A DNA stretch of 64,000 bases, from NCBI GenBank assembly GCA_964187785.1, contig OZ076419.1, positions 22,754,001-22,818,000 on the forward strand. Reading direction: 5' to 3'. Source of the stretch: Amphiscolops sp. MND2022 (lineage: Eukaryota). The notes below the pieces were generated by a model, which had not been told where the DNA came from, made no database searches, and worked only from the letters and a program-made list of their open reading frames with translations. Positions 1 to 48,073 of the stretch are shown piece by piece; the stretch's first letter is position 1, and the number at the start of each line of letters is the position of its first letter. Made by a program: the position numbers and the translations under genes.

Positions 1-654
1 TACCAAAAAATTTCTCTGATTTTTCTCAATCCCATGATAGTTTCCGTTTGTAGAAGTCACCAAGAAAACAAAAGTGGGAGCACTTTTTCGTTCAGTAAAA
101 TTTGAAATACATGTATTAAGATAGGAATTTCAGACTTATACTTGGTAAAACTCCCACCAATATACATTTTCAAATTATATCCAAAATCAAGTTTCATCTT
201 CGTTTTCGGGAAATTTGAGTGTATCTGCAAGGCAAAATTTATCAAAAAATATTTATTGGATCACTGATATTTTCTCAAAAATTAGCAATTTTAATTATTT
301 TCCTCCCAAAATCACATCTTTCTAACTTCGGAAACAATGATGGTTGAAATTTCAAACAAAAACCATTGTATTTTTAGCAAAAACTCAAGAAACTTTTGTT
401 TTTACCAAATTGAATCATTTCGAATAGTTTTGGAGAAATGAGACTGCAAAATTGGCCTTTTTGAGCAGCTAAGTCGCATTCTTTCTTCACACCACGGTAT
501 TCCTGGAATCTTCGATACACACTTGGTTACAGATTTAAAAATGGAAACTCATTCAAGATGTCTTTCGAAAATAATGACACTGTGATTAACAGGGAAACAG
601 CTGGTTGTACCCTTTGGGTCAAGTGCCCTCTCTGCAGGAAACAAGGATGCCTGC

Positions 655-1077
655 TCAGGCTAAAATAATGTCTGAACCCGAGGGACTATTTCAAATATTT
701 CTCAAACTTTAAAGTTTCAAAACTCATTATTTATTTGCTCTACAAGAGATAAATTTTTAAATTTCAATTATTTTTGTGATTTTTTTCACGAATGTTCATA
801 AATTCCATTATAAAACTGGTGCTATTTTTGTATTCAGTATACAATATTCAATGAAAGCTGTTTTCTCAGGCTAAAATAATGTCTGAACCCGAGGGACTAT
901 TTCAAATATTTCTCAAACTTTAAAGTTTCAAAACTCATTATTTATTTGCTCTACAAGAGATATATTTTTAAATTTCAATTATTTTTTGTGATTTTTTTCA
1001 CGAATGTTCATAAATTCCATTATAAGACTGGTGCTATTTTTGTATTCAGTATACAATATTCAATGAAAGCTGTTTTC
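655..1077. repeat. Tandem duplication, two near-identical ~211-bp units
   Basis: taaaataatgtctgaacccgagggactatt starts at 661 and again at 872; both units end in caatattcaatgaaagctgttttc. Confidence 0.9.
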
Positions 1078-1944
1078 TTCCTGGAAACACATAGTAAGAA
1101 AAGAAGGATACTGTACATGTAGTTGACAACAGGGAGAGTTTCTCAGAGCTGGTACTTAACTTAAAATATGGTTTAGCAACTTCGTTTTATATTTGCTCAC
1201 GACGGGGATCAAAAGTACCTGTATTTATGTTGCTTCTCAAAAATAATTGAAATAACTTGAGTCTCTAGTCTATAGCAAACATAACAAACAACTTGAGTCA
1301 AGTAATTTTATCAAACAACAGCAGCCGCCGGCGGAACGAACGAATAGATATCTTTGGCTAATCGAGGCCCACACGTTCATTTCATTGGTTGAGAGCTCTA
1401 GTACTGTGATTAAGAAAACATCCCCCGAGCAATTTCAGGTTTTCTGGCTCGATTTTTTCGGAATCGATTGCAAATTTGGAAAATTGTCAGAAGGAAATTA
1501 TTGTTGAATTTTCTTCTAGTTTAAATTAGTTTAACTTCGAAATTTTACAAACAAAAATTTAAAAAGTTACAGACATATGAATCTGAATTGGGACTTTTGG
1601 CCGTTTTTCTATTCTTTCAAAAATGACTTCAAGTTGACTGGGTTTTATATAACACAACTTTTAACAAGCCAACACTGGCTCATTTCGAGTTATTTCGTCG
1701 CAGAGCTTTTTAACAAACTAGTGGTTTCTAGGAATGATTCATCTCTGACATTACACACTGCTGCCTATAATCAAACCTTAAACACTGTTTTTCTCCTTAA
1801 CAAAGAGGTTTTTGCTTCTGTTATTCATACTCGGCTTGTACTGAAAGAGAAAACATACGATGCAAGGGAGCACAAAGGCGAAGTTAATTGGAAACTCCCT
1901 TACGATGACCCGATGACTTCCGGCGGCCATCAATGATTGATTTT

Positions 1945-2049
1945 GACGGTAGTTGACACTTTTTTTGGAAACAACCACCCGATATTTCCGACGGTAGATG
2001 TCCCTTTTTTTTGGGAACAACTACTCGATATTTCCGACAGTAATTGTCC
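1945..2049. repeat. ~45-bp tandem repeat, about 2.3 copies
   Basis: gacggtag...tttttgg(a/g)aacaac...cgatatttcc units start at 1945, 1990 and 2036. Confidence 0.8.
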
Positions 2050-3072
2050 AAAACACAGTTGGATACAATTCAGAACGTTACAAACTTACAGAAGAGCAAG
2101 GCTGTACAAATGCACTATAAATCGAAGGTAAATTGTACACATTAACTTATTGAATGAATAGTAACCTAATAATTGAATAATGGTCAACAACAAGTTTTTT
2201 TACCGTGAAATTATTAGTTAAAATAAAAATTTTAACTAGACTATTAAGTAATTGGACTTTGCCGTAATCATTTGCTGAATGTTTTGCTGAATTTGCTATG
2301 AACAAAAAATACCAGGTTGTTGACGGCAGGGGTATTAAAAAATATTTCTAGGTCACAATAATTGCAATAAAATTCTATACAATAATTATTTTCAGAACGT
2401 TATCAAATACAATACATTGTTGATTTTCCACAATAAGGAAAGAATTCGGAGACATGAGTTGGGTACCAACTACTTCCAATTTGGCGGACTTTTCAGTCAA
2501 ACTAATTACTTTGTATATAAAAATCGCAAAAAAATGCTGCCCATGCATCTCGAATGCCAATTATTTCTAATGATCAACGAACAATTTTCGAATGTTAATT
2601 TGATCAACAAATTAATTTGATTGGTTTTTCAAACAATCTTTTTCATAGACACAATAATTGCAATTATTGTTTCAACAAAATTCAGAAAAACAAAAGATTG
2701 TTTTATTAGTATTGCAATAGTATTGCAATGCAAAATTTAACACCTCTGGTTGACGGTCATTCGAAAATTCAGAGCAGTTTTTCAAACTACAAGTTTATAC
2801 CAAGCCACAGTGTACAATTTACTGAGCACAACAACTAACTCGGAGACAAGAAAGTTCAACATGTTAAGTTAACAATGATCAAGAACTTCTTATGCACAAC
2901 TCAGTCTGTACGCATTTACAGGCTGTATGCAGGGACATGGTGGCTAATGATCGACGCAACGTAACGATCAGTAGATGGTCTGAATTCTGAACTCAAAACA
3001 TTGAATTTGATTACCAATCCATTAATTTCATTCTGAAGTCTTTTTAGGAAATAAGAAAATCAAATGTAAGCC

Positions 3073-3610
3073 TTACGGATGTTCAACCAGGTGACCAATT
3101 TTGAGTTGAATAGTATCACTCACATTACCATTATGTAAATTAGGACGAAACAACCAGGATGTAACTAAAATGATAAGCAAATTTACCACGGTCTTGAACG
3201 AGGGTTTTTCTTTTCGGCATTTTGTGCAAACCTCTGACAGTTTGTGACGATCGCGGGTGAACATACGTGATGGCTTCCTCATAGCTGAATAAAACATCAC
3301 AATTCGGCTCGTCAACATCAGGTCTTCGGCACAAGAAAGTGAGGCGCTCCTCAGAAATTGCTTCCTTCGGGACCCTCACGCCGTCCTCGTTCGTATACCA
3401 GTTCCTCCTTCTGAAGCAAGGCTTGGGGCAAAGAAGATATGCTTTTTTTGAGGCCGTTTCCGTGAAAGCGGTGACACAAACATCGTTTACGAAGTCTTTG
3501 CGCGAGCAAATATTGTGAACGAGTCTCTCCTTGCTGAATTCGGGGCAAATCTGAAACAAAACTCGTGATAACTCACTAAGCAATTCGATCAACTTTGTTT
3601 CCTTATTCAT
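3073..3610 (-). pseudogene. Cys/His-rich (zinc-finger-like) ORF of unknown function, frameshifted; may continue in further degraded exons toward ~2.4 kb
   Basis: ORFs 3140-3688 (MNKETKLIELL...LCPKPC...LCRRPDVDEPNCDVLFSYEEAITYVH) and 3073-3318 (RDRHKLSEVCTKCRKEK) join across a frameshift. A candidate donor cc|gtaagg lies near 3078. Confidence 0.4.
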
Positions 3611-3647
3611 GATGATTACCAATTTTAGTTTTGGTCCCTGTTGTGAG

Positions 3648-6209
3648 TCACAACACGGCTTCATTATACAAAGACTTAATTCGATCACTTGTTTGATTCG
3701 AAACGATTGTGAACTGAAAAATACAACTCACAACAACAGCTTCACTTTCTTGATATCGATTCTCAATGGCCCTGTGAAGACGAAGGAAGTCCGGAGTTAT
3801 CATGCATCTCTCTGATGCTTTGAGCATCAAAATAGCTAGCATTTCCAACATGCCCGGAAACTTCTCATGCTCCCTGACGGAGTCTTCTTCAATGATCGCC
3901 TTTATTATCTGGTTCGAATGCCCTTCTGAAAAGAAATTCGTCCCTACTGCCACAGAGTCTCCACTTGTGAGGACTGCATGGATGTACTGAGACGGCATGA
4001 CGAAAACGTCGCCCGGATTAAGAGTAACCCTGAGGCAACCGCCCTCCAGTCTTTTGTGGCATCCAAAAAATGTTGGCCTAAAACGAAAACTCTAAGCGAC
4101 TATTCTCAAAATTTTCGGCGATGCAAAAACAATATAGTGCATTGAAATGATGCAAAAAATACAAAAATAGATGAACACAAAAGCTGAAATTCCTTTGTGA
4201 AAAATTACAACTTACATGTCGTCGCGTTCTTGTTTGGACCAGGCATTGAACAACTCCATGTTGTTTTCAGTTGGCGCAACCAGAAAGAAGGTCTTGGACC
4301 CAGTCAAGACTGTATAAAAGACAGATGTTGAACTGAAATCCGTGCGCCAAGTTGTTTGACAACCATCGTTGGAGATCAGCAAGTAGTATGAAGTCGCTAC
4401 TGAGAACGATTCTGCTGACTTACTGACCAGCTCATCCACAAGGTGGTTCACTGACGACTTTTTTATCATCGTTGGAACGCTGTAGATGGACTGAAAAGAC
4501 AAAAAAAATCAATATAAGTTGAAGTTGTTTCAAAACAATGTGCATTATGTTGAATAAAATCCTCAACGTCCAATTTGTAGGCAACTACTAGTAAACAGGG
4601 GGTTGGGGAAAAACAGAAAAGAAAAAGTTGTTTTTAAGTGGATTTGCGTTTTCCATCAAAGGAGCTAATTTAATGTTGTTTACCTTTGGCTGCATGGCGA
4701 TGTCTATAGCGTTTAAAGGATAGTAAACGCTGCTTCTGTCGGCGTTGATGAGCTCCTGCTTGAACTCGTCGAGACTGAGGTCACGACTCTGAAATGAAAT
4801 GATCATAAAGTGACTAAGACGGGAATAAGACGGACAACTTTTCCCTCGTTAGAATAGTTCAAATGCAGTTGTTCGACAAGTTCAACTTGTCCAAGTTGGA
4901 AAATGAGCTCACGACAGGGATCAAAGTGCAGTTGTTCCAGTTATTTTACGAAAAATACATGCTTCAAATTGAAAGTGATTCTACCAAAAACTTACTTCTC
5001 CAATTTTTGCCGACTTGACATTGATGGTTGCTGCACTTGCTTGTAGCTTCTGGGGGACTAGAAGCTCTTCGACAACTTCAGTGAAAGCGAGTTCTTCCAC
5101 TTGAGGTAGCTTCAAACCATGGCAATGGTTGACACCTCCACGCCACAACAGAGGCACACTGTGTCTCATCAGGGAATTGAATTTGACGACATGGTCGTCA
5201 ACGTTGCCTTCCCATTGAGCTACAGGAAACTTGTAGTCGAGGGGCACTTCCATCGCGAACTTGAAAAATCCATCAGATCCAAACACATCAGAAGGAATGT
5301 GGTTGAAATCTTCTGGCCTGAATCGCTCGTCAGTGTTGCTAGACGAATCGGAGCCCAAAGAAACTGCAGCCTAAACAGTTGCAAGTGTTAGCAAAACTAT
5401 ACATAGTCCGATAAAATGAAATCCAGTCACATTATCACCGTGTAAAACACGGCGTTTCGAGAAACAAATGGTCAATCAAATCATTCAACATGTGTTCTTA
5501 AATAGAAAAAAAAATAGGACAGACACTCACATTTGCTCCTTCCTGGCATTGAGGATTCTTCAAAAGGTGTACGCGCAAGTCATAAGGGTAAACATATGAC
5601 TTGCCACAACCTCTGCCGTAGCATAAGTTAGGCTTCCGCGTCAAGCCTTTTGCAGCTGCTGTAACATAAAAGTTACATGAATAAAAACACACTTTTTGTT
5701 TGAAATCTAGTTTATTTTTTTCAAAATCATTGAGTTTCCCTTATCGTTTCGGGCATGATAAATTGGACTTTTCAAAATGTTACAAGGCAATCAATTTTAA
5801 CACACATTGTAATGACTAACCGTACTGGTACATTCGGGTAGGCAGGCCTTCTGCTTTCCGCTTTTGCTGCTCCTTACAATACTTTGTATTGTAGTGCTTC
5901 TTCAGCAGTTTTTTGGCGGAAATGATCTGGCCGCAGAGCTGGCACGTTCTCTCCATGAGCTTGAACTGCTCTCTTGGCATTCGGGGACAGACTTTGCGGT
6001 GGCGTAGGATGTTGGACAGCTTGTCCACAACGTCACAAGTGCCTAAAAGAAATGCCATATGTCAGATTAAACTTTTCCGTGAAAAAAGTTACAGCTTGAT
6101 TACGTTACAGCTTGATCACAAAAAAATTGTTTATCGAACCTTGGCCGCATGGGACTTTCTCTGGTGTCTTTCGACGAGACGTTGATGGCGTGGTCGGCAG
6201 TGTTGCCAT
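3648..6209 (-). CDS. Zinc-finger + JmjC-domain protein (KDM2/KDM7/PHF8-like histone demethylase fold), 7 exons, ~534 aa; first Fe-binding His replaced by Arg
   Basis: Exons 6209-6140, 6042-5821, 5658-5531, 5370-4996, 4788-4684, 4490-4216 and 4077-3648 have GT-AG introns with consistent phases and no frameshift. YLLISNDGCQTTWRTDFSSTSVFYTVLTGSKTFFLVAPTENNMELFNAW aligns without gaps to the KDM7-type YCLMxxxxSYTDFHIDFGGTSVWYHVLxGEKIFYLIxPTxxNLxxYExW. MPSQYIHAVLTSGDSVAVGTNF is the distal His motif. Three N-terminal Cys/His fingers (CGQGTC..H..C, CQLC..H..C, CYGRGC..H..C). Confidence 0.85.
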
Positions 6210-6647
6210 TTGATATCAACTGAAAAAATTCCAGGAAGTCGCTCATGAGTTATACCCCATTCAATATTGTATGAAATTAACTATGAAATGATTGTCAAAT
6301 ATATACCCTCAACAACTCACAACAAGTCACACTATTCCAGGAAGTCACACGTCCTCATAGATCATTCTTGAGACAACTGTCATAGATTATTCAATAGTAA
6401 AAAAGGTAACAGAGGGAATGTAAACTCGATGCAGTTAAATATTGCGCTCACGACGGTAATCAAAAATTCGACTGATGAAACTTTCAGAGAAAACGTCACG
6501 GCGAAAAGATATACTATGGAAGTATAAGTTGAACTGCGAATATTTGGTTTAATCAATCATCATAGATCTATCATAAGTTTAAAATCTGCACTGAAATGAT
6601 AATTAAGCGGTCAAAGAGACCTTGTCTGATAAAACAAGTAGAATCTA

Positions 6648-6890
6648 CTAGGTGAACCAAAAAAACGGAACATCGTATTATTTGTGAGCAAGGCACTGAT
6701 AATCGTTCAATTTTTTCTGTCATTCATTCTGTCATTTCGTTCTCACTTTCAATGTGTGAAAGCATTTTCGCTTCTAAGAAATGTACCAATTTGAATGATT
6801 GGCAGGAGCTTTCAAACGATTGTTGACAAATATTAGGAACTTTGAGAGCTCGAAAAATTTGTGTACATTACGTTTTTTTGGTTCACCTAG
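6648..6890. mobile_element. MITE with TIR CTAGGTGAACCAAAAAAAACG and TA flanks (internally deleted copy)
   Basis: TA|CTAGGTGAACC...GGTTCACCTAG|TA; lacks ~80 bp present in the other copies. Confidence 0.8.
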
Positions 6891-7022
6891 TAGATAGCAC
6901 TGAATTGATAATGAAGCGGTCAAAGGGACCTTGTCTGATAAAATAAGTAAGTTTTTAGATATGCACTGTATTGATAATTAAGCGGTCAAAGAGACCTTGT
7001 CTGATAAAACAAGTAGAATCTA

Positions 7023-7347
7023 CTAGGTGAACCAAAAAAACGGAACATCGTATTATTTCTAAGCAAGGCACTGATAATCGTTCAATTTTTTCTGTCATTC
7101 ATTTAGATTTAAGATCAAATTACATAATCACATCTCCAACCAAAGATGATTTGAACCATCAAAAATAGTCTAGACGTCTATACCAGTCATTTCGTTCTCA
7201 CTTTCAATGTGTGAAAGCATTTTCGCTTCTAAGAAGTGTACCAATTTTGAATGATTGGCAGAAGCTTTCAAACGATTGTTGACAAATATTAGGAACTTTG
7301 AGAGCTCGAAAAATTTTTGTACATTCCGTTTTTTTTGGTTCACCTAG
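7023..7347. mobile_element. MITE, same family (longer copy)
   Basis: Same TIR and TA flanks; carries the extra internal ~80 bp also seen, inverted, at 49.1 kb. Confidence 0.8.
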
Positions 7348-7486
7348 TAGATAGCACTGAATTGATAATGAAGCGGTCAAAGGGACCTTGTCTGATAAAA
7401 TAATTAGATATGCACTGAATTGATAATGAAGCGGTCAAAGGGACCTTGTCTACTGAATTCGTAACAAATAAGTAAGCTTTTAGATA

Positions 7487-10400
7487 TTAAACGTCGTCTA
7501 GTTTTCTCTTCAAGGCGGCCTTTTTTAGTGTGTACTTGTACTTCCGCATTGCTGTGTGGTAAGTTAATGAACCATGTCGTAGGGGGTTTGATTGACGTTG
7601 TAATTGTGGGGCCATAGATATGTACTTCATCGTTTTGAATTTGGCTCTCGCAGACTCATCTTCTTCAAAAACAAAACCTTTGGGATCAATCAAGGACTTC
7701 GTCTGTACACAGGCGATTACAAATTCAGCATTCAAGTAAATCCAGTTACCGAGTATCGTATTGGAAAGCGCCTTAGTTGCAGCTTTTTCTTTACCTGGTT
7801 GACCTTTAATGAATGCGTCGATACAATTTCGATATGGTAAAATGCAATAGTGATGGCTCAAAAAATTCAGCTTGCTTCTGTTGATGATGTCTACATTGAA
7901 CACAACATTTCCTCCATTTTCAGTGATCTTCTTCTCAAGACTCGATTGAGTTTCTCTCAGGTGACCATATGTTCCAAGAGTGACAAAGTGCATACCTCTA
8001 AACATGTCTTCAGTTCTAAGATAGTCAAATTCAGGTTCTGGAATAGGTTCACGGCAAATTTCAAGATACGTCTTTGTCAAATCGGTTTTTCCATACAACT
8101 TCCGGCAAGATTCAAGTGTCGAAGACTTTGAAGAACATAAATCAACTGCACGGTAGAAGGAAAACTGAATATCGAGATAACTGCATGACATGTTCCAAGC
8201 ATCATTGCCACCATCACGCATTGTCTTCGTATTGTAGTCTTTGGCTGTCGTATGGTGGCTTTTTTCAGTTCCTTCTGTCATGTAATAAAATGGAGACAGA
8301 AGCTCACCCTTCTCAAAAAGTCTGAGTAAAATATCCAATTTCAATTTGTATGGCGTCAACGCACGATCACCGAAAAGACATAAAGTTGACTGGTAATAAA
8401 TCTCATAGAGATCTTTACACTTTGGAATGTCTTCAAGATTCAATTTTCTCTGTCGAAGCAAATCAAGTAACTGGTAAAAAGATTGGAATTGGAGGTCAGC
8501 CAGTTTCCGAACAGAAATGTCCACTCCTTTTGTGAAAGATGCCTCCAACCCGTCAACCAATGATATCAATACGTTATAAGACGTTGTAGAGGTTGTTTGG
8601 TCAGCTTTGTAGACATGAGGTGTTTCAAATGAATACACACGTTCACAAATTGGGCAGTCTGATTGGCCATAGTCGCTGATTCTGTTGCAGTCGGATATTA
8701 TGACTTCGGCGTCTCTGAAACTGAGAGATACAGCCTTGCAGAGTTTTTCAACGATCTCAAACTTGAATCTCGGCGGTTTCACATTTCGTTCCGTTATGTT
8801 ACATTCGAGTCTACATATTGCTGCATGGTCTTTCAACAGCAACATCGAGTCCACATGCAACTTCAAGTCACTTTCGACTGAACGAACAACCATATGCAGC
8901 AAATCAGGACATGTATTGAAAGTGGATTTGAGAAAAATGAGAGAATCTTTTGGGATGCATTCGTTGATGTCAATGATCAGTTCTGTTCTTCGACCAGTAG
9001 CATAATCGACAGTTGACGGAAGAATCACCCCCCTTCCTTCAATTTCTCTCTTATTTTCAGCGGTGTCTTTTTTTGTCTGTTACAGTGGTGGATTCGAAAT
9101 ATCTGCAGGATCACTGACATAAAGACACATCTTTGACAGACAAGAAACATCACTGCTAACACCTTTTAAAAGACGCAATTGGAATGGTGAATCACCCGAA
9201 CAACTCAGTATGGCACCTTCGTCATGCAAGGCCTTTGTTTCGTTGTATAGCCATCCAGGGCGTCCAAGCACTTCTGACATGGCGAGATTCTATTCTAGGT
9301 TGATTCGCACATCTTTACCCTGGGAAACATTCCAAAAATTCATATTTAAACCTCCAGTATCTCACAACAGGGAAAAATTTAAAATTATATCAACAAAACA
9401 TCTGAGTGCTGCTCAAGGCGGACCAAATTGGTTTTCCAACTACTTAGTTATCATTTAAGTGTAACTCACGACAGGGACCAAGTTCAGTTTTGCGTTACCA
9501 CTAAACTATTAAGGGTAGCTCACAACAGGGACCAAACTTAGGTTCTCAATAAACATTTTGATGTAGCCCACAAAAGAAATCAAGTTCCAAATTTTTAGAT
9601 TAAAACTTGAAAGATTCACCTCAAACACAGCAAACGTGAAGACATGGGTTGAGGATTGCTCAGTTTCGATGCCGCTTTGCAAAATTCGGAAGGCCATTCG
9701 TACGACGTCTTTTTCCCCCGAGACATTGCATCACCATAAATGTCGACTCTCAAGCCGACTGGGCTGGTCTTGTTATACAAATTGCAGGCAACGAATCTGA
9801 CAAATGTAACAAGATTAACACGGAACCCAGTGGGGGTTTTTCTGGGAGTGAGTATTGATCTGAAATCTTCGTTCAATTTATATGGTATTGCTTGAAGTTC
9901 ACGTCTTGAAGGGAGAATGGTGGCTTTGATGAAAGGGCTTTGTATAAGTCGACGTATTTTGACTAAAAATCCTGAGGATTACTGAGAGTAAGTAGACATT
10001 GAATCTCCATTTGAATGTCTTCCCTTTCAAGGCAAAACAAGTTCGGCAGAAATAGATGAAGAAGTTTATGAACTAAGGTGTTTTTTTTCCTGTTGAAAGT
10101 TTGACTTGTGAAAAACTGCTTGAGAGTTTCAATAAAATGACCCAATGCAATTTCTGATTCTGATATAGTCTTCAAAGAAGACCTCCAAAGATTCTGCAGC
10201 GAAACGCATGTTTCGAAAGTCGAGGAGGATCCTTGCAAGGATGACTGTTGTGAAAAAGTAGTGTCAATTGTCGAAAAAAATAAGTTGAGCCTGGAATGGG
10301 CAACGAAGGGAAAAATTGTCGTATATAGCTAACTCTTTCAGTCGTCCAGGGAATCAATGATGGGGGTGCAGATATTATCAATAAATCGAATACGTCCTCG

Positions 10401-10551
10401 CGCAACAAAGCACACCTTTCATTGAATCCATGGGGCTTGTATACATCAGAGAAGTTTACATTCAGTCCTGCAACAATCATGAATCAGAACGTGCCACGAA
10501 CGATCAACTACAATGCTATGCTTAAGTGCATTCCTTACATCTCACAATCAT
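7487..10551 (-). pseudogene. RAG1/Transib/Chapaev-like DDE transposase with C-terminal BRCT domain; frameshifts and premature stops
   Basis: Candidate catalytic residues: LRVDIYGDAMS (D at 9730-9732), SCSGDSPFQLRLLKG (D at 9191-9193) and YYMTEGTEKSHH (E at 8264-8266), plus the CPDLLHMVVRSVE motif. GT-AG intron 9619-9320 joins FAVFE|GKD. In-frame TAG near 9290 and TAA at 9080-9082; frameshifts near 10170, 9965 and 9710. C-terminal FRGMHFVTLG...KITENGGNVV...LNAEFVIACVQTKSLID is a BRCT pattern (~8005-7670). Confidence 0.75.
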
Positions 10552-10623
10552 GTTTTGGACAATTACGTTTACGATCTCTAGTTATGTTTTTGATTGAAAA
10601 AGGAAAGAAAATAAACCTTTTAA

Positions 10624-11028
10624 ATGCTTCTTGAGGAAATCTGTAGCCTTCCTGCGATCATTGGGAAGAAGACAGTCATTGCTTTCCAGCAGGAACACAT
10701 TCGGGAACAAGACGTTCAGGAATATGAGTTTCACATAATTGATGCCAGCATAAGTGATGATTGGTTTTTGTGTCATTTCGATCTGAAATACAAAACATGT
10801 TCAAGCAAGAAACCAGAAACAAGTCACAAAAACGATGATACTTGCTGTAATGATTATAAAAACAATTTGAAAAGTTATGATAGCCACCAGAAGTGGACCG
10901 TAGAAGTGACTGTAGAAGAAAAAACAAATTGCAAACTACCGACAGACTTTTTGAAATGTCCGAGATCATACAGCTGCGTGACTGAAACCTATTTTACCGG
11001 GTTGTCTCGTTATGCGCAAAAGCGTTAA
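10624..11028 (+). CDS. 134-aa ORF of unknown function, divergent from the transposase; faint resemblance to a degenerate Ulp1-type protease
   Basis: Open ORF. IIDASISDDWFLCHFDLKYK recalls the Ulp1 HWxLxxxD strand but lacks the catalytic His. Confidence 0.3.
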   Translation: MLLEEICSLPAIIGKKTVIAFQQEHIREQDVQEYEFHIIDASISDDWFLCHFDLKYKTCSSKKPETSHKNDDTCCNDYKNNLKSYDSHQKWTVEVTVEEKTNCKLPTDFLKCPRSYSCVTETYFTGLSRYAQKR

Positions 11029-11410
11029 CCCCAGAGAAAAATCCAAGTAACTCGAAACGTAAATCAAAAATTCAAAAAAAACTTCTTTGGATGTCCTGAA
11101 AACATTTTTAAATATATGTGAGACACCACTAGTATCATACGTATCATCATCATGTAAGGAACAAAAGACTGTCTTCGGCCTGGGGCTCGTTTTTGCAAAT
11201 GGTTGAAAACTTTGTGAAATGGCACAACTGCTAAATTTGCGCGGAACTGATACCTAGGCATTGGGGAGCAAATAGGCATTTTTAAAATTTGATCATCGCT
11301 CAATCAATCAATTATGATAACGCTCAGTGTAGAAGCAGGCCGCCGGCGGGCATTTTTTAAATCACGGTACTGTACTAAGATCACCTTCACTAATGATTAC
11401 ACTTCAAGTT

Positions 11411-12148
11411 TCAAAAGAGGGTAGGACTTTCAGGCTTCTCGGTCACTTGGGAGTTACTAGTAGTAGTAGTCGTAGAGGTCTCTCGCTCAGATTCACTGGT
11501 AGATGTTCCTGGGGGCTGTGTGGACCGTGAGGCACAAGAGGAATTGGAACGTTGCCGGCAAAACTCTGCCCTGCAAGCTGCATCATTGTAATCGAAGCAG
11601 AGTTCCTCCAAGGCATCGATGGATCTCTTCGCAATGAACAGAACTACATTTTGGCCACCGATATGTGCCCGCTTCATTCTCACATTACATTCTTGGTTGT
11701 TGCTCGGTCTGTAGTTGAGGAGACGTCCAAACGATCTTCTACCAGGGTGACATTTGCACGTTTCGGCAGTAGCATCGAGCACAAAATCACCACAGTCAAG
11801 AACATACTGCGTGTTTGAACGTTCTCGTAATAGTGTCTGGTCTATGACAATGTCTGTGTGGTAGTCACAAACTATTTCCGATTCTTTGATTGAGGCAGTT
11901 GTGACCACTCCTCGGCCGACAGAACCATTCTCGAACATTATTTTTTCACGAACTTGAAGGAAGGGCCACTCTTGGTTACAGATGTACTCTTGTATTTTTG
12001 AGGTCTTCACAAAAGTTGATGTCAGCTTGCGAAAAAACATACTCACGCCTCTTCCGAGATCCGTCTGAATTACTTCAGGTACTGTACGTCTAGTGCTTCG
12101 TCTAACATCACTATTTGAAGGCTTCCACGCTAACATCGTGTTGTCCAC
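11411..12148 (-). CDS. SET domain, SETD8/PR-Set7-like; C-terminal part of a frameshifted fusion gene
   Basis: GRGVVTTASIKESEIVCDY, FVLDAT, FGRLLNYRPS (NH motif reads NY), VVLFIAKRSIDALEELCFDYND (ELxFDY intact). Confidence 0.9.
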   Translation of the reverse strand: MDNTMLAWKPSNSDVRRSTRRTVPEVIQTDLGRGVSMFFRKLTSTFVKTSKIQEYICNQEWPFLQVREKIMFENGSVGRGVVTTASIKESEIVCDYHTDIVIDQTLLRERSNTQYVLDCGDFVLDATAETCKCHPGRRSFGRLLNYRPSNNQECNVRMKRAHIGGQNVVLFIAKRSIDALEELCFDYNDAACRAEFCRQRSNSSCASRSTQPPGTSTSESERETSTTTTTSNSQVTEKPESPTLF

Positions 12149-13660
12149 AATTCTTGCGTGATCCGACCAACCGTAGGACGAATTTCGCTACGCAATCTTT
12201 GGACGGTTGAGTCGGTCCATGGAAGAAATTATTGATTTTTTGGACACGCAAACTCACGAGTTTGTAGCGCAAGTGGTCATTCACACGTCCTCCGAGGTTC
12301 ACTCGTCTCCGATGCTGTCGCATCAATACAAACTCTTCTCATGATTTCTTTGCTGCATTCGGCCGGGGTCGGAATAGTGTCCTCGGGATTTTTTGGAAGA
12401 AGGAAAAATTTTTTCAGCTGAAAAAGACCATCATGGTTAGTTTTATGATAACCTAACTACTTTAGTAGTGTTTTGTAGGAGTTTTGTTCATCGAGAAACC
12501 TTAAAGTCTAAATTGCTCGAAAAGTTTGGTGAACAAACGAAAAGCAAAATGATCAACCTGATTGGGTCGAAGTTGGTCACTGCCATGGGCACAGCTGAAA
12601 AATTTTATTGAATAAAAATTTTCAGCTGTGCTCATGGCAGGACCAAATTCAATCCAATAACTTCTTTCAGTGCGCACGATGGATATCAAAAGTTTTAACT
12701 TACTGAATTGATACTGGCGAAACTATCACTGGAGTACAGTTGTTTTTTTGAAGTCGGGGACATCGTAGTCATCTCTACTGGCTTCAACTGTCTTTGAGTT
12801 GCTGAATCAGAATCGGGGGTGTTGGTTGTTGGCGTTTTGGTTGCCTGCGAGATCACTTCCACTGTTGAACTAACAGTTCCATCATTTTCGAGAATTGTTG
12901 TAGTTGGCTCGTAGACGAGTTTTCTTTTTGGCTTCCTGTGGGCTGCATTCATTTTGTTTTGAAAGTTCTCACAAACTCTGGTAACATTCAATTGTTTTTT
13001 CTCTTGTGAATTATAAAAAAATGACTGTGTTACTTCTTGCAGAGTCAAATCGAAGGGTTCTGTGAGAAAACTATCTTTCAGAACATCGAATGCATTTATC
13101 CAAAATGGGCGAACACGTTTGAAATAGAAAGTCATCACTTTTTTCTCGAACTCGTTGAACTTTAGAGCCCTCCTAAATTTGTACTTGTTTCCATCAGTCA
13201 CAGCACAAACATATTGACCATTTCCTTTCCTGACGAAATTCACGAAGTCATACACCGTGAACTTCTTGAGAAGTCGGGCAGGGGGGAGTTGTTGATGACA
13301 CACCAGATGATCACGAGCGACTGGAACACAAGCATGGCTTCTTTTTTTTGAGGAACACGGTCAATTTGCCATAGATGTTCGACATTAGAGCGTCCTTCTG
13401 CCCATTTTCACATGACGCTCAACAGTCCACCACAATCACTTGCATCCTGGGCCGCTGGCTGAAGTTCGAGGGGAGAAGCATTGTTGCACCCGTTGGAATT
13501 GACCGCGTCGATTGGGCTCGTCGAAGTTCGTTGATGACACATGGTTCGGATGTGGTGTTGAATGGGGGTTATCCAATCCCTCTGGGCGTGTTTGAAGCGG
13601 GATACTAGAATTTTCAAGCTGCTCATGATGGCCTTGGGGTTTCCAGATGGAGTTTGATAA
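12149..13660 (-). pseudogene. Tyrosine-recombinase-like region upstream of, and probably fused to, the SET domain; multiple frameshifts
   Basis: VFQSLVIIWCVINNS in one frame continues as PARLLKKFTVYDF in another across the G6 run at ~13281-13286; restoring one base gives NNS-R-PARLLKKFTVYDF. It is followed by YVCAVTDGNK..., FYFKRVRP and MRRVCIDAT, resembling YR-family box I and downstream segments. Confidence 0.55.
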
Positions 13661-16600
13661 CCTTAAATTACAAAAAACATGTAATTCGATTTGATTACCG
13701 AAACCTAATTGATTTTTGAAATCGACCTGTTTTTTTTAATAAGAGAAAGCAGATAAATCCAAGGAAATTCAGAAAAAAATGATTGCATTCAGTTATCTAA
13801 AAAAAACGATTTTTGTTTTACACTGATTGTTTAGCTCAATAATTTACTCAGTTGAGCTTGGAGACATCCGTTTTCTACGAAAACAAATTCGATGTTCTAC
13901 TTTTGATTTCAAAATTTTGGTTCCTGGTGTGAGCTCCATTACAAGGCATAAAATTATTCCAGTGAAATCACTCAGAATTTCAGTTATACACACTGCGAGT
14001 TGAACTGAAATCAGCATAAAGTACTTTATTTTGTGTCTATAAACACTGCAGCACATTATGCAGCAAAACATGATGTATCAACGACTTTAGGAAGTTGTAA
14101 AATCGGAATATTATTTCAATCGAAGTACATCGGGAGGATCATTTTCGACGCCAAATGTTTGACCAAAAATTGTTCAGAAAGTATTCTTCAACTTATTTAG
14201 GATATTATATTATGAAAAAAGTGAAAATCATTTGTTGAAATTGAAAAAAGTGGTAATCATTTGTTAAGTAACTTGTTAGAAATTACATTAGCCTAACAAC
14301 TGTTCACTCTAATATACTTTTGCATTTTTCTGAATCACATATAGATATTTAGGAATACGCCCCCGGCTTTGTCACAATTTAATCATAAAAATATTGCTTA
14401 TCTGTTATTCCTTCACTCATGGAGTCTGAGAAATAGAACTAATAAAAAAGTCTAAGTTCAAAAAAAGTCAAACTGAAATAAGTTTACTTTATGAACAAAA
14501 CAACTTTGGATATAAAATGTTTGATTTCAAATAGCATCATTCGCAGACAAAAATGAATTGTCAAAGAAACGTGACTGAATTCTACGTGTCGTCCATATTC
14601 ACCCGTGGTCAGTCATTTGAAGAACGAACTAGCTGTTGTTCATACAATCATGGAGTCGTTACTTTGCTCGTGAAGAGTCGTTTAGAGATATTTGAAGAAG
14701 TTGATATGTTTGAATTCAAATAGAACAATTTTGGACGAAATTATCAATAAATGTTGTTTCAATCAGACACTGTGTGTATCAGTGTGTCGATTCTCCGTCG
14801 ATTTTAATTGAGGTATTGTTATAAAGAACTGAGATAAGTGTTTGAAGAATCCAGAAAAATGTTCAAGAATTGAGAAACGTAAACAAGAATTCAGATAAGT
14901 AAACAAAAAATGACAAAATGCGAAGAATCCTCACACCAATGATGTTACACGTGCGGCATAGATTATCATTAATATGAAGAATCCACAAATCAATTTTCTC
15001 ATTTCTTGAAATTTTCATTTTTGCACTGCCAATATTAGTGTGTGAATTGTTCAATCATTTTGGCGGCACTGCCAATTTGTTTGAAGTGCGCAACTTTTGT
15101 GATTTCTTGAGAACACATTTTGGTAGGTGAGAAAACCAACTTTTGTCAATCCTTGAAAAAAGCAAAACTTCCCCGATTAGCGTCGTAATGAGAGTGCATA
15201 GGCAAGCTTAATTTGCTCAAAGCACAACTTTGTGCTTTCAATATCTCGGATTTCACGACCATACCTTCAACCGGGCAAAATTGGTAAAGTGCGTCATAAG
15301 TCCCGGATTCCACGGATTTCGTCGTGGATTCCAGTAACAATGCTTAGCTGTACGCACTGTCGGCATGCTGCTGTGTCCTGGATTCCACAAAAACGTAAGT
15401 TTTGCAAAATGAACCAATGTAGTACAGCCATCCTCCAGATCGAACGACCATTGCAGGTAGAATGCTATAGAAAACTAATAGATAACAGAGTCAGCTAGCA
15501 ATTATAGAACCATGGTTTTACCTACAATAATCAGAGTACAGACAAAAGATGGCAAGAATTTAATGTTCTCCGTCTAAGTAAACTTTTCGAATATACTCAT
15601 TCATGGTTTCACTGCTTTCCTTTATGGCCTTCTATTTCATTTCCCATAGCTTATTTTCTCAGGTTCAGCTTTTTACATTTTCTTACTCAACTCAAGCGTT
15701 CTCTATTGGTCCATACTACACTGGTTTATGGAGCACTGTCGTTATAGCGCAGCGCGCCAACAAAAACTGTACGTGTACCTAATAGCACTAAATTTTGCTT
15801 TTGGAATCTGGCATGGAGTCGACCAGTATAGAAGAAAAATTCAGTTGAACAGAATTTCTTCATAAAATTTTAAAGCAGAACGTCAGCTAAGCTCCAAAAA
15901 AAGTTCCGCCCTGAACGTGTTTTAACGGCGTTTTTTGAAGCACGATAAAATTATGGCATTATAAAGTTTCATAACTTGAAGGAAATCATGGAAAGTTCAA
16001 ACGGTTTGACAATTTTTGGCTTTGTTCAACTTGGAAATTCAGTTCTTCAAAACTTAATCTTTCCTATCAGAAAGTATGATAAAGAGTGTTTTATTTTTTC
16101 AAATAAATATCTGCATCTTGACCCCGACAAAATGAGTTAGAAATTTTGCATTAAAATTAAAAAAATTGAACGCTTTGCAATTATTCCGGCCAATTTGGCA
16201 GTTTTCACAAACACATATGCAACTAAGCTCAAATTTTTCCTAATTTAACGCCTAACAGAAATGAAGTTTATATCTTTTGAGTATAGAAATAGTCTACAGC
16301 AAAATTTCGGAAGAAACCAGGCTGAGAAATGATTTTTCCCACATGCGAATAATGGCGGTGGAAAAATTTTTGTCGCACGCATGGTTAAATTCTAGTTCTA
16401 AGTTCTGTTTTGAGGGACTGTTCAAAGTGGTCAGTATTATTCATTACAGCAGCAGTAGCTTTTTTGCAAATTGCTCAAAAGCGACAGTTCTAATATCGGT
16501 ATCGAATGGGTCAGAAAATCTCTATAGCTGACTCTGTCTAATTTTACCAAGAATTGCTTTGCTTGTAAGTGCGAACAAAGAGTGTTGCGTGAATAAGTGC

Positions 16601-47444: not shown

Positions 47445-48073
47445 TACAGTACTGTGATTCAGAAAACCTCCCCGGGCAACTTTGGGCTCGATTCACTCGT
47501 TTGGAAAACATCAGAAATATAAATATCTTCGAATTTCATCAAATTTGGGTTAGTATTTTTCTAAACTTTTCTGGGAGCAAGTTTGTGAAAGCTACAAACA
47601 GCTAATTTTGAGCAAAATTGGGACTTTTTGACTGCTTTATCTACAGTTTTTTGACACGTTTTATGCTCATTTAACTCCCACAAATCTACTAAATCTATGT
47701 ATATATTTAGATTTCAAAATATTCAACCGTTTTGGAAACATCATGCTCCAAAAGTAAAATTTCGTCGATTTACATGTCTTAAATTAGAAAACTAACGTTT
47801 CGCGGTAAAAAAAATGCAGTTATTTTTTTATTTAGAAGGGTTTTGAAACGCAAAATATATCTTTGAAGTCTAGACAATCTGCCAAATACAATGATTTTGA
47901 TTTTTTTTGAAAACCATTTCAAAAACCTGTCCAAAATTGAGAAAATAACAAAAGTGTTTTTTCTGCGCCTGAGAATTCACTTGATGTGATCAAAATTGAA
48001 AGTCATAACAAAGAAGCGATTTTAAAAAACGACGCTCAGCGCATAGGCACGTTTTCTTAATCACAGTACTGTG
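47445..48073. mobile_element. ~630-bp MITE with TIR (C/T)ACAGTACTGTGATT(A/C)AGAAAAC, related to the ends of the 1399-11374 element
   Basis: Left tacagtactgtgattcagaaaac; right gttttcttaatcacagtactgtg. The first ~200 bp share motifs with 1400-1600 (ggctcgatt, aattgggacttt). acgctcagcgca resembles 11320-11332. Confidence 0.8.

Follow-up and report, generated by a model that had tools for sequence, protein, structure and literature searches.

Where does a DNA transposon that carries genes for chromatin enzymes begin and end? The question is raised by a 64,000-nucleotide stretch of the Amphiscolops sp. MND2022 genome (assembly GCA_964187785.1, contig OZ076419.1, positions 22,754,001 to 22,818,000 of the forward strand), referred to here as the window. 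An initial annotation proposed that the block 1399-11374 is an autonomous transposon bounded by imperfect inverted repeats, with a DDE transposase, a JmjC gene of histone-demethylase type and zinc-finger open reading frames (ORFs) inside, and that a miniature inverted-repeat transposable element (MITE) at 47445-48073 derives from it. A large DNA transposon is indeed present, as documented by sharp inverted termini, 2-bp target-site duplications and an empty site. The boundaries and terminal inverted repeats (TIRs) proposed for it had to be abandoned: the true element measures 27.6 kb, ends in other TIRs and includes a SET-domain gene that lies outside the proposed block. The 10-kb block is very probably the central part of an old, 5'-truncated and mutated copy of this cut-and-paste transposon, and the motifs at its two ends are best read as MITE remnants.

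The inverted repeat described for the block is real as a motif. Its 19 nt at 1400-1418 (plus strand) recur inverted at 11353-11371 (minus strand), with 16 of 19 positions identical, and the motif has four matches in the window (1400, 11353 and both ends of the 47445-48073 MITE), compared with 0.06 expected from shuffles. It does not, however, mark an element boundary. Junctions were compared in 10 copies with flanks, five of them extended by 10 kb on each side, and in 16 further left-end matches. The same outer sequence precedes the motif at the left junction (1399) in 26 of 26 copies, and the same outer sequence follows it at the right junction (11374) in 10 of 10. Both end segments are multicopy, and their match pairs are spaced 9-10 kb apart in the genome. 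A check of copies for both ends and a target-site duplication, which the initial annotation had suggested, thus found homology running through 1399 and 11374 in every copy, and a stand-alone 10-kb block with independent flanks was never seen among the copies sampled by left- and right-end matches (0/26).

The actual termini lie farther out. On the left, some 40 copies, each set in unrelated sequence, end sharply at window -5488 (negative positions precede the first nucleotide of the window). The right terminus was reached by walking along a contig of the same species (L067), 99% identical to the window's genome in unique flank; it is sharp at L067:15778, and 38 copies end at the same base with 99-100% identity. 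A complete copy on a single contig is 27,593 bp long. The termini are mutually inverted over about 22 bp in total, composed of the 13-bp CATTACGATACAC, three variable bases and CCGGTA. More than 30 copies show the terminal sequence CATTACG...CGTAATG, that is, 5'-CA..TG-3' termini. The subterminal motif TTGACTAACTTAC is concentrated near them, with 8 of its 9 occurrences in the full copy within 400 bp of the ends, and a 24-bp palindrome is located 23 bp from the 3' terminus.

Two copies whose flanks both lie on a single contig show target-site duplications of 2 bp, CC and GA, and in both of them the third base differs. A 108-bp mini-derivative is flanked by AT..AT, while the window copy and copy C2 present the corresponding empty site with a single AT. 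The 2-bp duplication was therefore seen three times (CC, GA, AT), once against an empty site, and the target can be of any sequence. The copies on contigs ctg184405 and ctg185213, which might have provided a fourth pair, lack the 5' terminus. The mini-derivative consists of CAT followed by the last ~90 bp of the 5' end. It resides in the intron between the exon of the domain upstream of SET and the SET exon, at L067:5823-5932 with equivalents in copies C3c and C1, and is absent from C2 and from the window copy (empty site at window 12680).

The family comprises at least hundreds of copies in the 1.07-Gb genome, and first-look candidate counts drop from the 3' end toward the 5' side (2,706, 991 and 147-254). 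The youngest copies have near-identical termini, and family members appear to have been active recently.

The copy in the window occupies positions 1-14219 (as a whole, window -5488 to 14219) on the minus strand, as do all its genes, and was delimited by homology to the five extended and 16 further copies. About 8.3 kb are missing from its 5' side: it diverges from all other copies at ~14219, where these continue. With ~90% identity to the other copies, it is an old member of the family. The sequence after 14219 is not the continuation of an element of the divergent subfamily L104, described below. A second, L104-type terminus, CATTACGATACATGTGCCGTC, was noticed at L033:4180 (window -5820), 333 bp upstream of the window copy's 3' terminus and oriented like it; neither flank yielded an element body that would match it.

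The segment that the window copy is missing corresponds to L067:7340-15778 of the full copy. Two antisense ORFs in it, each of about 240 amino acids, have no family match, and segments within it are themselves of very high copy number (~4,000 first-look candidates). Two further observations concern variation among copies. Between the zinc-finger gene and the transposase, window 6583-7405 contains clustered repeats of 23-28 nt, ATCTACTAGGTGAACCAAAAAAA, some inverted and some direct; the length of the cluster varies from copy to copy. Copies C10a and C1 carry inserts of ~8-9 kb at the equivalent of window 11455-11475, where they share a (TAG)n-rich insertion site immediately before the region of the SET stop, and these inserts show an apparent overlap of ~21 bp.

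What, then, are the motifs at 1399 and 11374? The left end had been said to resemble the left end of the window's MITE over about 200 bp. Similarity of that extent does exist, with ~70% identity over 207 nt of the segment 1399-1609, but to another member of the same family, 467 bp long; against the window's own MITE, the direct match of 1400-1609 covers only 36 bp. The likeness claimed for the right end amounts to a shared TIR of ~27-38 bp, matching the right TIR of the MITE at 23 of 27 positions, and its extension past the TIR is marginal. We therefore describe 1399-1609 (plus strand, TIR at 1399-1418) as an embedded MITE-family fragment of left-end type, fixed in all copies, and 11337-11374 (minus strand) as an inverted MITE-type TIR fragment fixed in all copies of the subfamily. 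The latter lies downstream of the SET stop codon, at a distance of 37 bp, and its motif is absent at the equivalent site in L104. Both are best read as remnants of unrelated TA-duplicating MITE insertions in the ancestor of the subfamily, not as functional ends. The initial annotation had itself named this outcome, ends that are independent MITE fragments, as contrary to its proposal.

The MITE at 47445-48073 (plus strand) is an old copy, ~75% identical to others, of a TA-duplicating family with ~1,900 first-look candidates in the genome. Another member, 467 bp long, is inserted in the window copy at window -3599 to -3133 (L033:6401-6867), where it is flanked by a TA duplication. Since this insertion is private, with an empty site in four other copies, the MITE family was active after the window copy had inserted. 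In its TA duplications, proven by the empty site, the family resembles TA-duplicating MITEs of the Tc1/mariner-type (Stowaway-like) or ESTA-like kind, whereas the giant element has neither their termini nor their duplication type. MITE termini, CAGTACTGTGATT, differ from those of the giant element, and the MITE and the 1399 and 11374 fragments have 5'-CAGT termini. Because termini and duplication type both differ, the MITE is not a derivative of the giant element, and the idea that it is a passenger mobilised by it finds no support. The link between them went wrong because element borders had been drawn at embedded MITE fragments, and the case illustrates for annotation that MITE-type inverted repeats within a large element can pass for its ends.

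A divergent subfamily of the same species, L104 (contig ctg185078), bears on the integrity of the element. Its transposase is 63-69% identical to that of the main subfamily, its SET and the N-terminal domain accompanying it share 46-54% amino acid identity with their counterparts, and N-terminal domain, SET and transposase follow in the same order. A related 3' terminus is also present. Because this order is kept, SET and transposase form a long-standing pair across the supposed right boundary. JmjC and zinc-finger genes are missing from L104, and so are both inner motifs at the equivalent positions, among them the MITE-type motif that would lie between SET and transposase; a MITE-type end is carried elsewhere. 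The JmjC gene, being absent from L104, was acquired later, in one of the subfamilies. The L104 transposase is nearly intronless, with overlapping called ORFs of 460 and 610 amino acids, and about 7 kb of unexplained sequence separates it from the 3' terminus.

A single mobility gene is recognisable in the element; it is spliced and encodes a DDE transposase of about 1,000 amino acids. In the window it extends over 7487-10480 (minus strand), with a C-terminal BRCT domain at ~7679-8005, and is a pseudogene. The 513-residue ORF at 7487-9028 is part of the last exon, 7490-9343, which is 93% identical to the intact 616-residue protein P0001 and is interrupted in the window copy by in-frame stops at 9290-9292 and 9080-9082. 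A family profile collected 385 homologues in a representative protein library, with full-length members of ~1,000-1,150 residues. Among element copies, the ratio of nonsynonymous to synonymous substitution rates (dN/dS) is ~0.55 for the transposase, compared with ~1.1 in frame-shifted controls.

The assignment of this transposase as RAG1/Transib-like holds at the level of the fold. In structure comparison, an AlphaFold model of a full-length family member (predicted local distance difference test score, pLDDT, 81) matched the mouse RAG1 core with a Foldseek E value of 2.6e-8 and Z 17.9 (root-mean-square deviation 4.4, 422 residues, model 219-775 on RAG1 459-1006), Helicoverpa Transib (HzTransib) with Z 16.3 and the amphioxus RAG-like protein (BbRAGL) with Z 16.1. 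Model residues 816-965 correspond to BRCT domains of BRCA1 type (Z 11.5). Invariant acidic residues D321, D426 and E725/E728 (model numbering) occupy the expected D, D and E positions and are kept in the window copy. Sequence searches returned less: Pfam, run on nine full-length homologues and, with E values up to 1 admitted, on the whole alignment of 48 members, found BRCT only and no match to a CACTA or RAG1 model; profile searches against PDB sequences retrieved only BRCT-containing proteins; and an atlas search with the transposase ORF gave no usable match. The Pfam RAG1 model PF12940 found no match in the genome, a null that is uninformative because the controls of the tool were silent as well. 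Relatives of the model in AlphaFold DB clusters include uncharacterised proteins annotated MULE, DUF4218, SET, PHD, RING or SAP. The predicted structures suggest that RAG1-fold transposases are widely associated with chromatin domains, by fusion or as companions, and are poorly annotated.

The JmjC exons, of KDM2/PHF8/KDM7 type, lie at 3140-5358 (minus strand); exon 4212-4502 matches KDM2A (E 4.7e-9) and PHF8 (E 1.8e-8), and also KDM7. Upstream of them, putative C2H2 zinc-finger exons are placed at 5498-6058 (minus strand), with a dN/dS of 0.57. Zinc fingers had been listed among the contents of the block alongside the transposase and JmjC genes; these two are present, while the zinc fingers are represented by weak, sub-threshold zf-C2H2 matches (E 0.01 and 0.07). 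The JmjC gene was indeed borne out as cargo: together with its zinc fingers it is multicopy, and it was found in every examined copy of this subfamily. In the window copy alone, the first iron-binding His of JmjC is replaced by Arg (R-T-D), while 17 of 17 other copies read H-T-D; judged from these sequences, the change is decay private to the window copy. The later iron-ligand His is present in most copies, with Tyr in C3b and Leu in L068. dN/dS of JmjC among copies is ~0.55-0.7, compared with ~1.1 in frame-shifted controls, and many copies carry stop codons.

A SET-domain exon similar to KMT5A/SETD8 follows at 11411-12148 (minus strand), scoring 42.8 bits with Pfam SET against a cut-off of 22.4. 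Among solved structures, KMT5A comes closest (E 1.6e-6), the methyltransferase assignment being made from sequence match. Upstream of SET, one or more exons at 12695-13626 (minus strand) encode a conserved domain with 22 homologues, possibly a recombinase-like remnant. Its weak named atlas matches (0.84-0.86) are all tyrosine recombinases, and its model, which is poor (pLDDT 47), resembles the first half of the XerH catalytic domain only, with Z 6.6, below significance. The HxxR..Y catalytic motif was not found in an alignment of 13 homologues.

Taken together, these modules would allow the following course of events. The transposase would bind the outer ends, excise the element and reinsert it with a 2-bp stagger; its BRCT domain may link transposition to DNA-damage or repair factors; and the SET and JmjC proteins might modify the chromatin of the element itself or that of its targets, to the advantage of the element. 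We tentatively consider the possibility of a recently active giant transposon, of an undescribed RAG1-fold lineage, which carries a chromatin toolkit (SET and JmjC) alongside a BRCT-fused transposase and would rewrite histone marks on itself or on its targets and engage the DNA-damage response, although we would call this full version doubtful. If true, it would represent a counter-silencing or self-targeting system.

Several observations weigh against parts of this account, and some of them favour other explanations. Action of the transposase on the outer ends is argued from a single circumstance, namely that no second DDE gene turned up within the element. The transposase alignment lacks C(2)C / H(3-4)H zinc motifs in the form canonical for the CMCT clade (CACTA/Mirage/Chapaev/Transib and allies) and shows C(26/39)-P-D-x-x-H-x-x-x-R-x-x-E and H722..E725..E728...H732 instead. 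No recognisable gene was seen in the 5' 8 kb, in a search that took in only part of the ORFs of the 27.6-kb element. The SET exon, compared in five copies only, has a dN/dS of ~1.0. This last value is expected if SET and JmjC are captured copies of host genes, passive and decaying passengers of the same giant transposon as in Pack-MULEs, and the stop codons in many copies, together with the absence of JmjC from L104, which makes it dispensable for mobility, point the same way. Constraint on JmjC and the zinc-finger exons (dN/dS ~0.55 relative to ~1.1) and JmjC iron ligands intact in all 17 other copies speak against passive carriage, and SET with its N-terminal domain, conserved in L104 next to the transposase at the identities given above, indicates long co-inheritance under constraint. 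That the enzymes are mere passengers is accordingly conceivable, but we do not regard it as likely.

Finally, the two inner motifs form a non-random pair, are correctly oriented to each other and each abut TA, which an ancient nested element would also produce. On that view, 1399-11374 was a TA-duplicating, RAG1-related autonomous transposon (ESTA-like) with the TIRs of the MITE family. It inserted in an unrelated carrier and was amplified with it as a composite, and its transposase would be the parent of the MITE, as the initial annotation proposed. Recent activity of the MITE family requires that some transposase recognise its TIRs, and RAG1-like fungal transposons with TA duplications (ESTA) have been described (PMC12730594). 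Yet no copy out of 26 has independent flanks, the right end shares little beyond its TIR with the MITE, and L104 keeps SET and transposase together over the supposed boundary with no MITE-type TIRs there. Moreover, the search turned up no second transposase able to mobilise the outer element, whose 5'-CA..TG-3' ends and 2-bp duplications are those expected of a RAG1-like (CMCT) enzyme; we consider nesting improbable. Least probable is an origin by segmental duplication, or as a non-TIR element such as a Helitron, long interspersed nuclear element (LINE), long terminal repeat (LTR) element or Crypton. The fall in copy number toward the 5' side, the palindrome near the 3' terminus and the possibly recombinase-like domain would agree with it. 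Against it stand two sharp, mutually inverted termini with unrelated flanks, 2-bp duplications and an empty site; termini that are neither TC..CTRR nor TG..CA; and a search of the element that detected neither a reverse transcriptase nor Rep/helicase, nor a tyrosine-recombinase catalytic motif in complete form. Helitron, LINE, LTR and Crypton candidates were dropped on the inverted termini with 2-bp duplications and on the missing enzymes. The giant DDE transposon with embedded MITE remnants is thus the reading that we retain.

V(D)J recombination descends from a RAG1-fold transposase, which makes transposases of this fold of general interest. The element adds a distinct lineage to them: its transposase has 385 homologues in the library, is not covered by a Pfam model and is fused to BRCT, and its duplications are of 2 bp. 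As it appears to have been active recently, transposase and ends should be obtainable from natural intact copies for biochemistry. SET and an intact JmjC in one element would extend the epigenetic cargo of transposons to histone demethylation, and with such an element one could test directly whether transposons actively edit the chromatin by which they are silenced. Neither a BRCT-fused RAG1-like transposase nor JmjC cargo was seen described in the literature that we searched, which did not include Repbase.

Compared with known systems, the transposase shares with RAG1, Transib and ProtoRAG (BbRAGL) the core fold over ~420 residues (Z 16-18), with D, D and E in equivalent elements, while sequence identity to them is only 10-12%. 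The element differs from this group by duplications of 2 bp instead of 5 bp and by termini CATTACGATACAC that are not CACGGTG or similar to recombination signal sequences, two features that set it apart from the Transib superfamily, and in that no RAG2-like partner was seen in it. CACTA elements are large and multi-gene, with subterminal repeats, as is the giant element, and Mirage makes 2-bp target-site duplications. RAG1-like transposases, 5'-CA..TG-3' termini and duplications of 2-5 bp characterize the CMCT clade, and 2-bp duplications are given for PlavakaA/B (PMC12730594). The giant element shows each of these features. It departs from the clade by its non-canonical zinc motifs, the BRCT domain fused C-terminally, its length of 27.6 kb and the presence of SET and JmjC on board. 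On account of the fold, the termini and the 2-bp duplications, it may be placed in or near the CMCT clade, as a new lineage or a variant with unusual cargo, a placement made from sequence and a predicted structure.

Cargo of a comparable kind is known from fungal transposons, where KDZ, Plavaka and ESTA carry TET/JBP genes (PMC12730594), and that source cites SET cargo in HarbingerS/MuDR elements of Phytophthora, an oomycete. All of these, like the element studied here, are DNA transposons carrying enzymes of epigenetic marks, either a 2-oxoglutarate dioxygenase or a SET methyltransferase. What sets the giant element apart from the fungal TET/JBP elements is that its dioxygenase is a JmjC of histone-demethylase type, that a SET gene is combined with it in the same element, and that its host is probably an animal.

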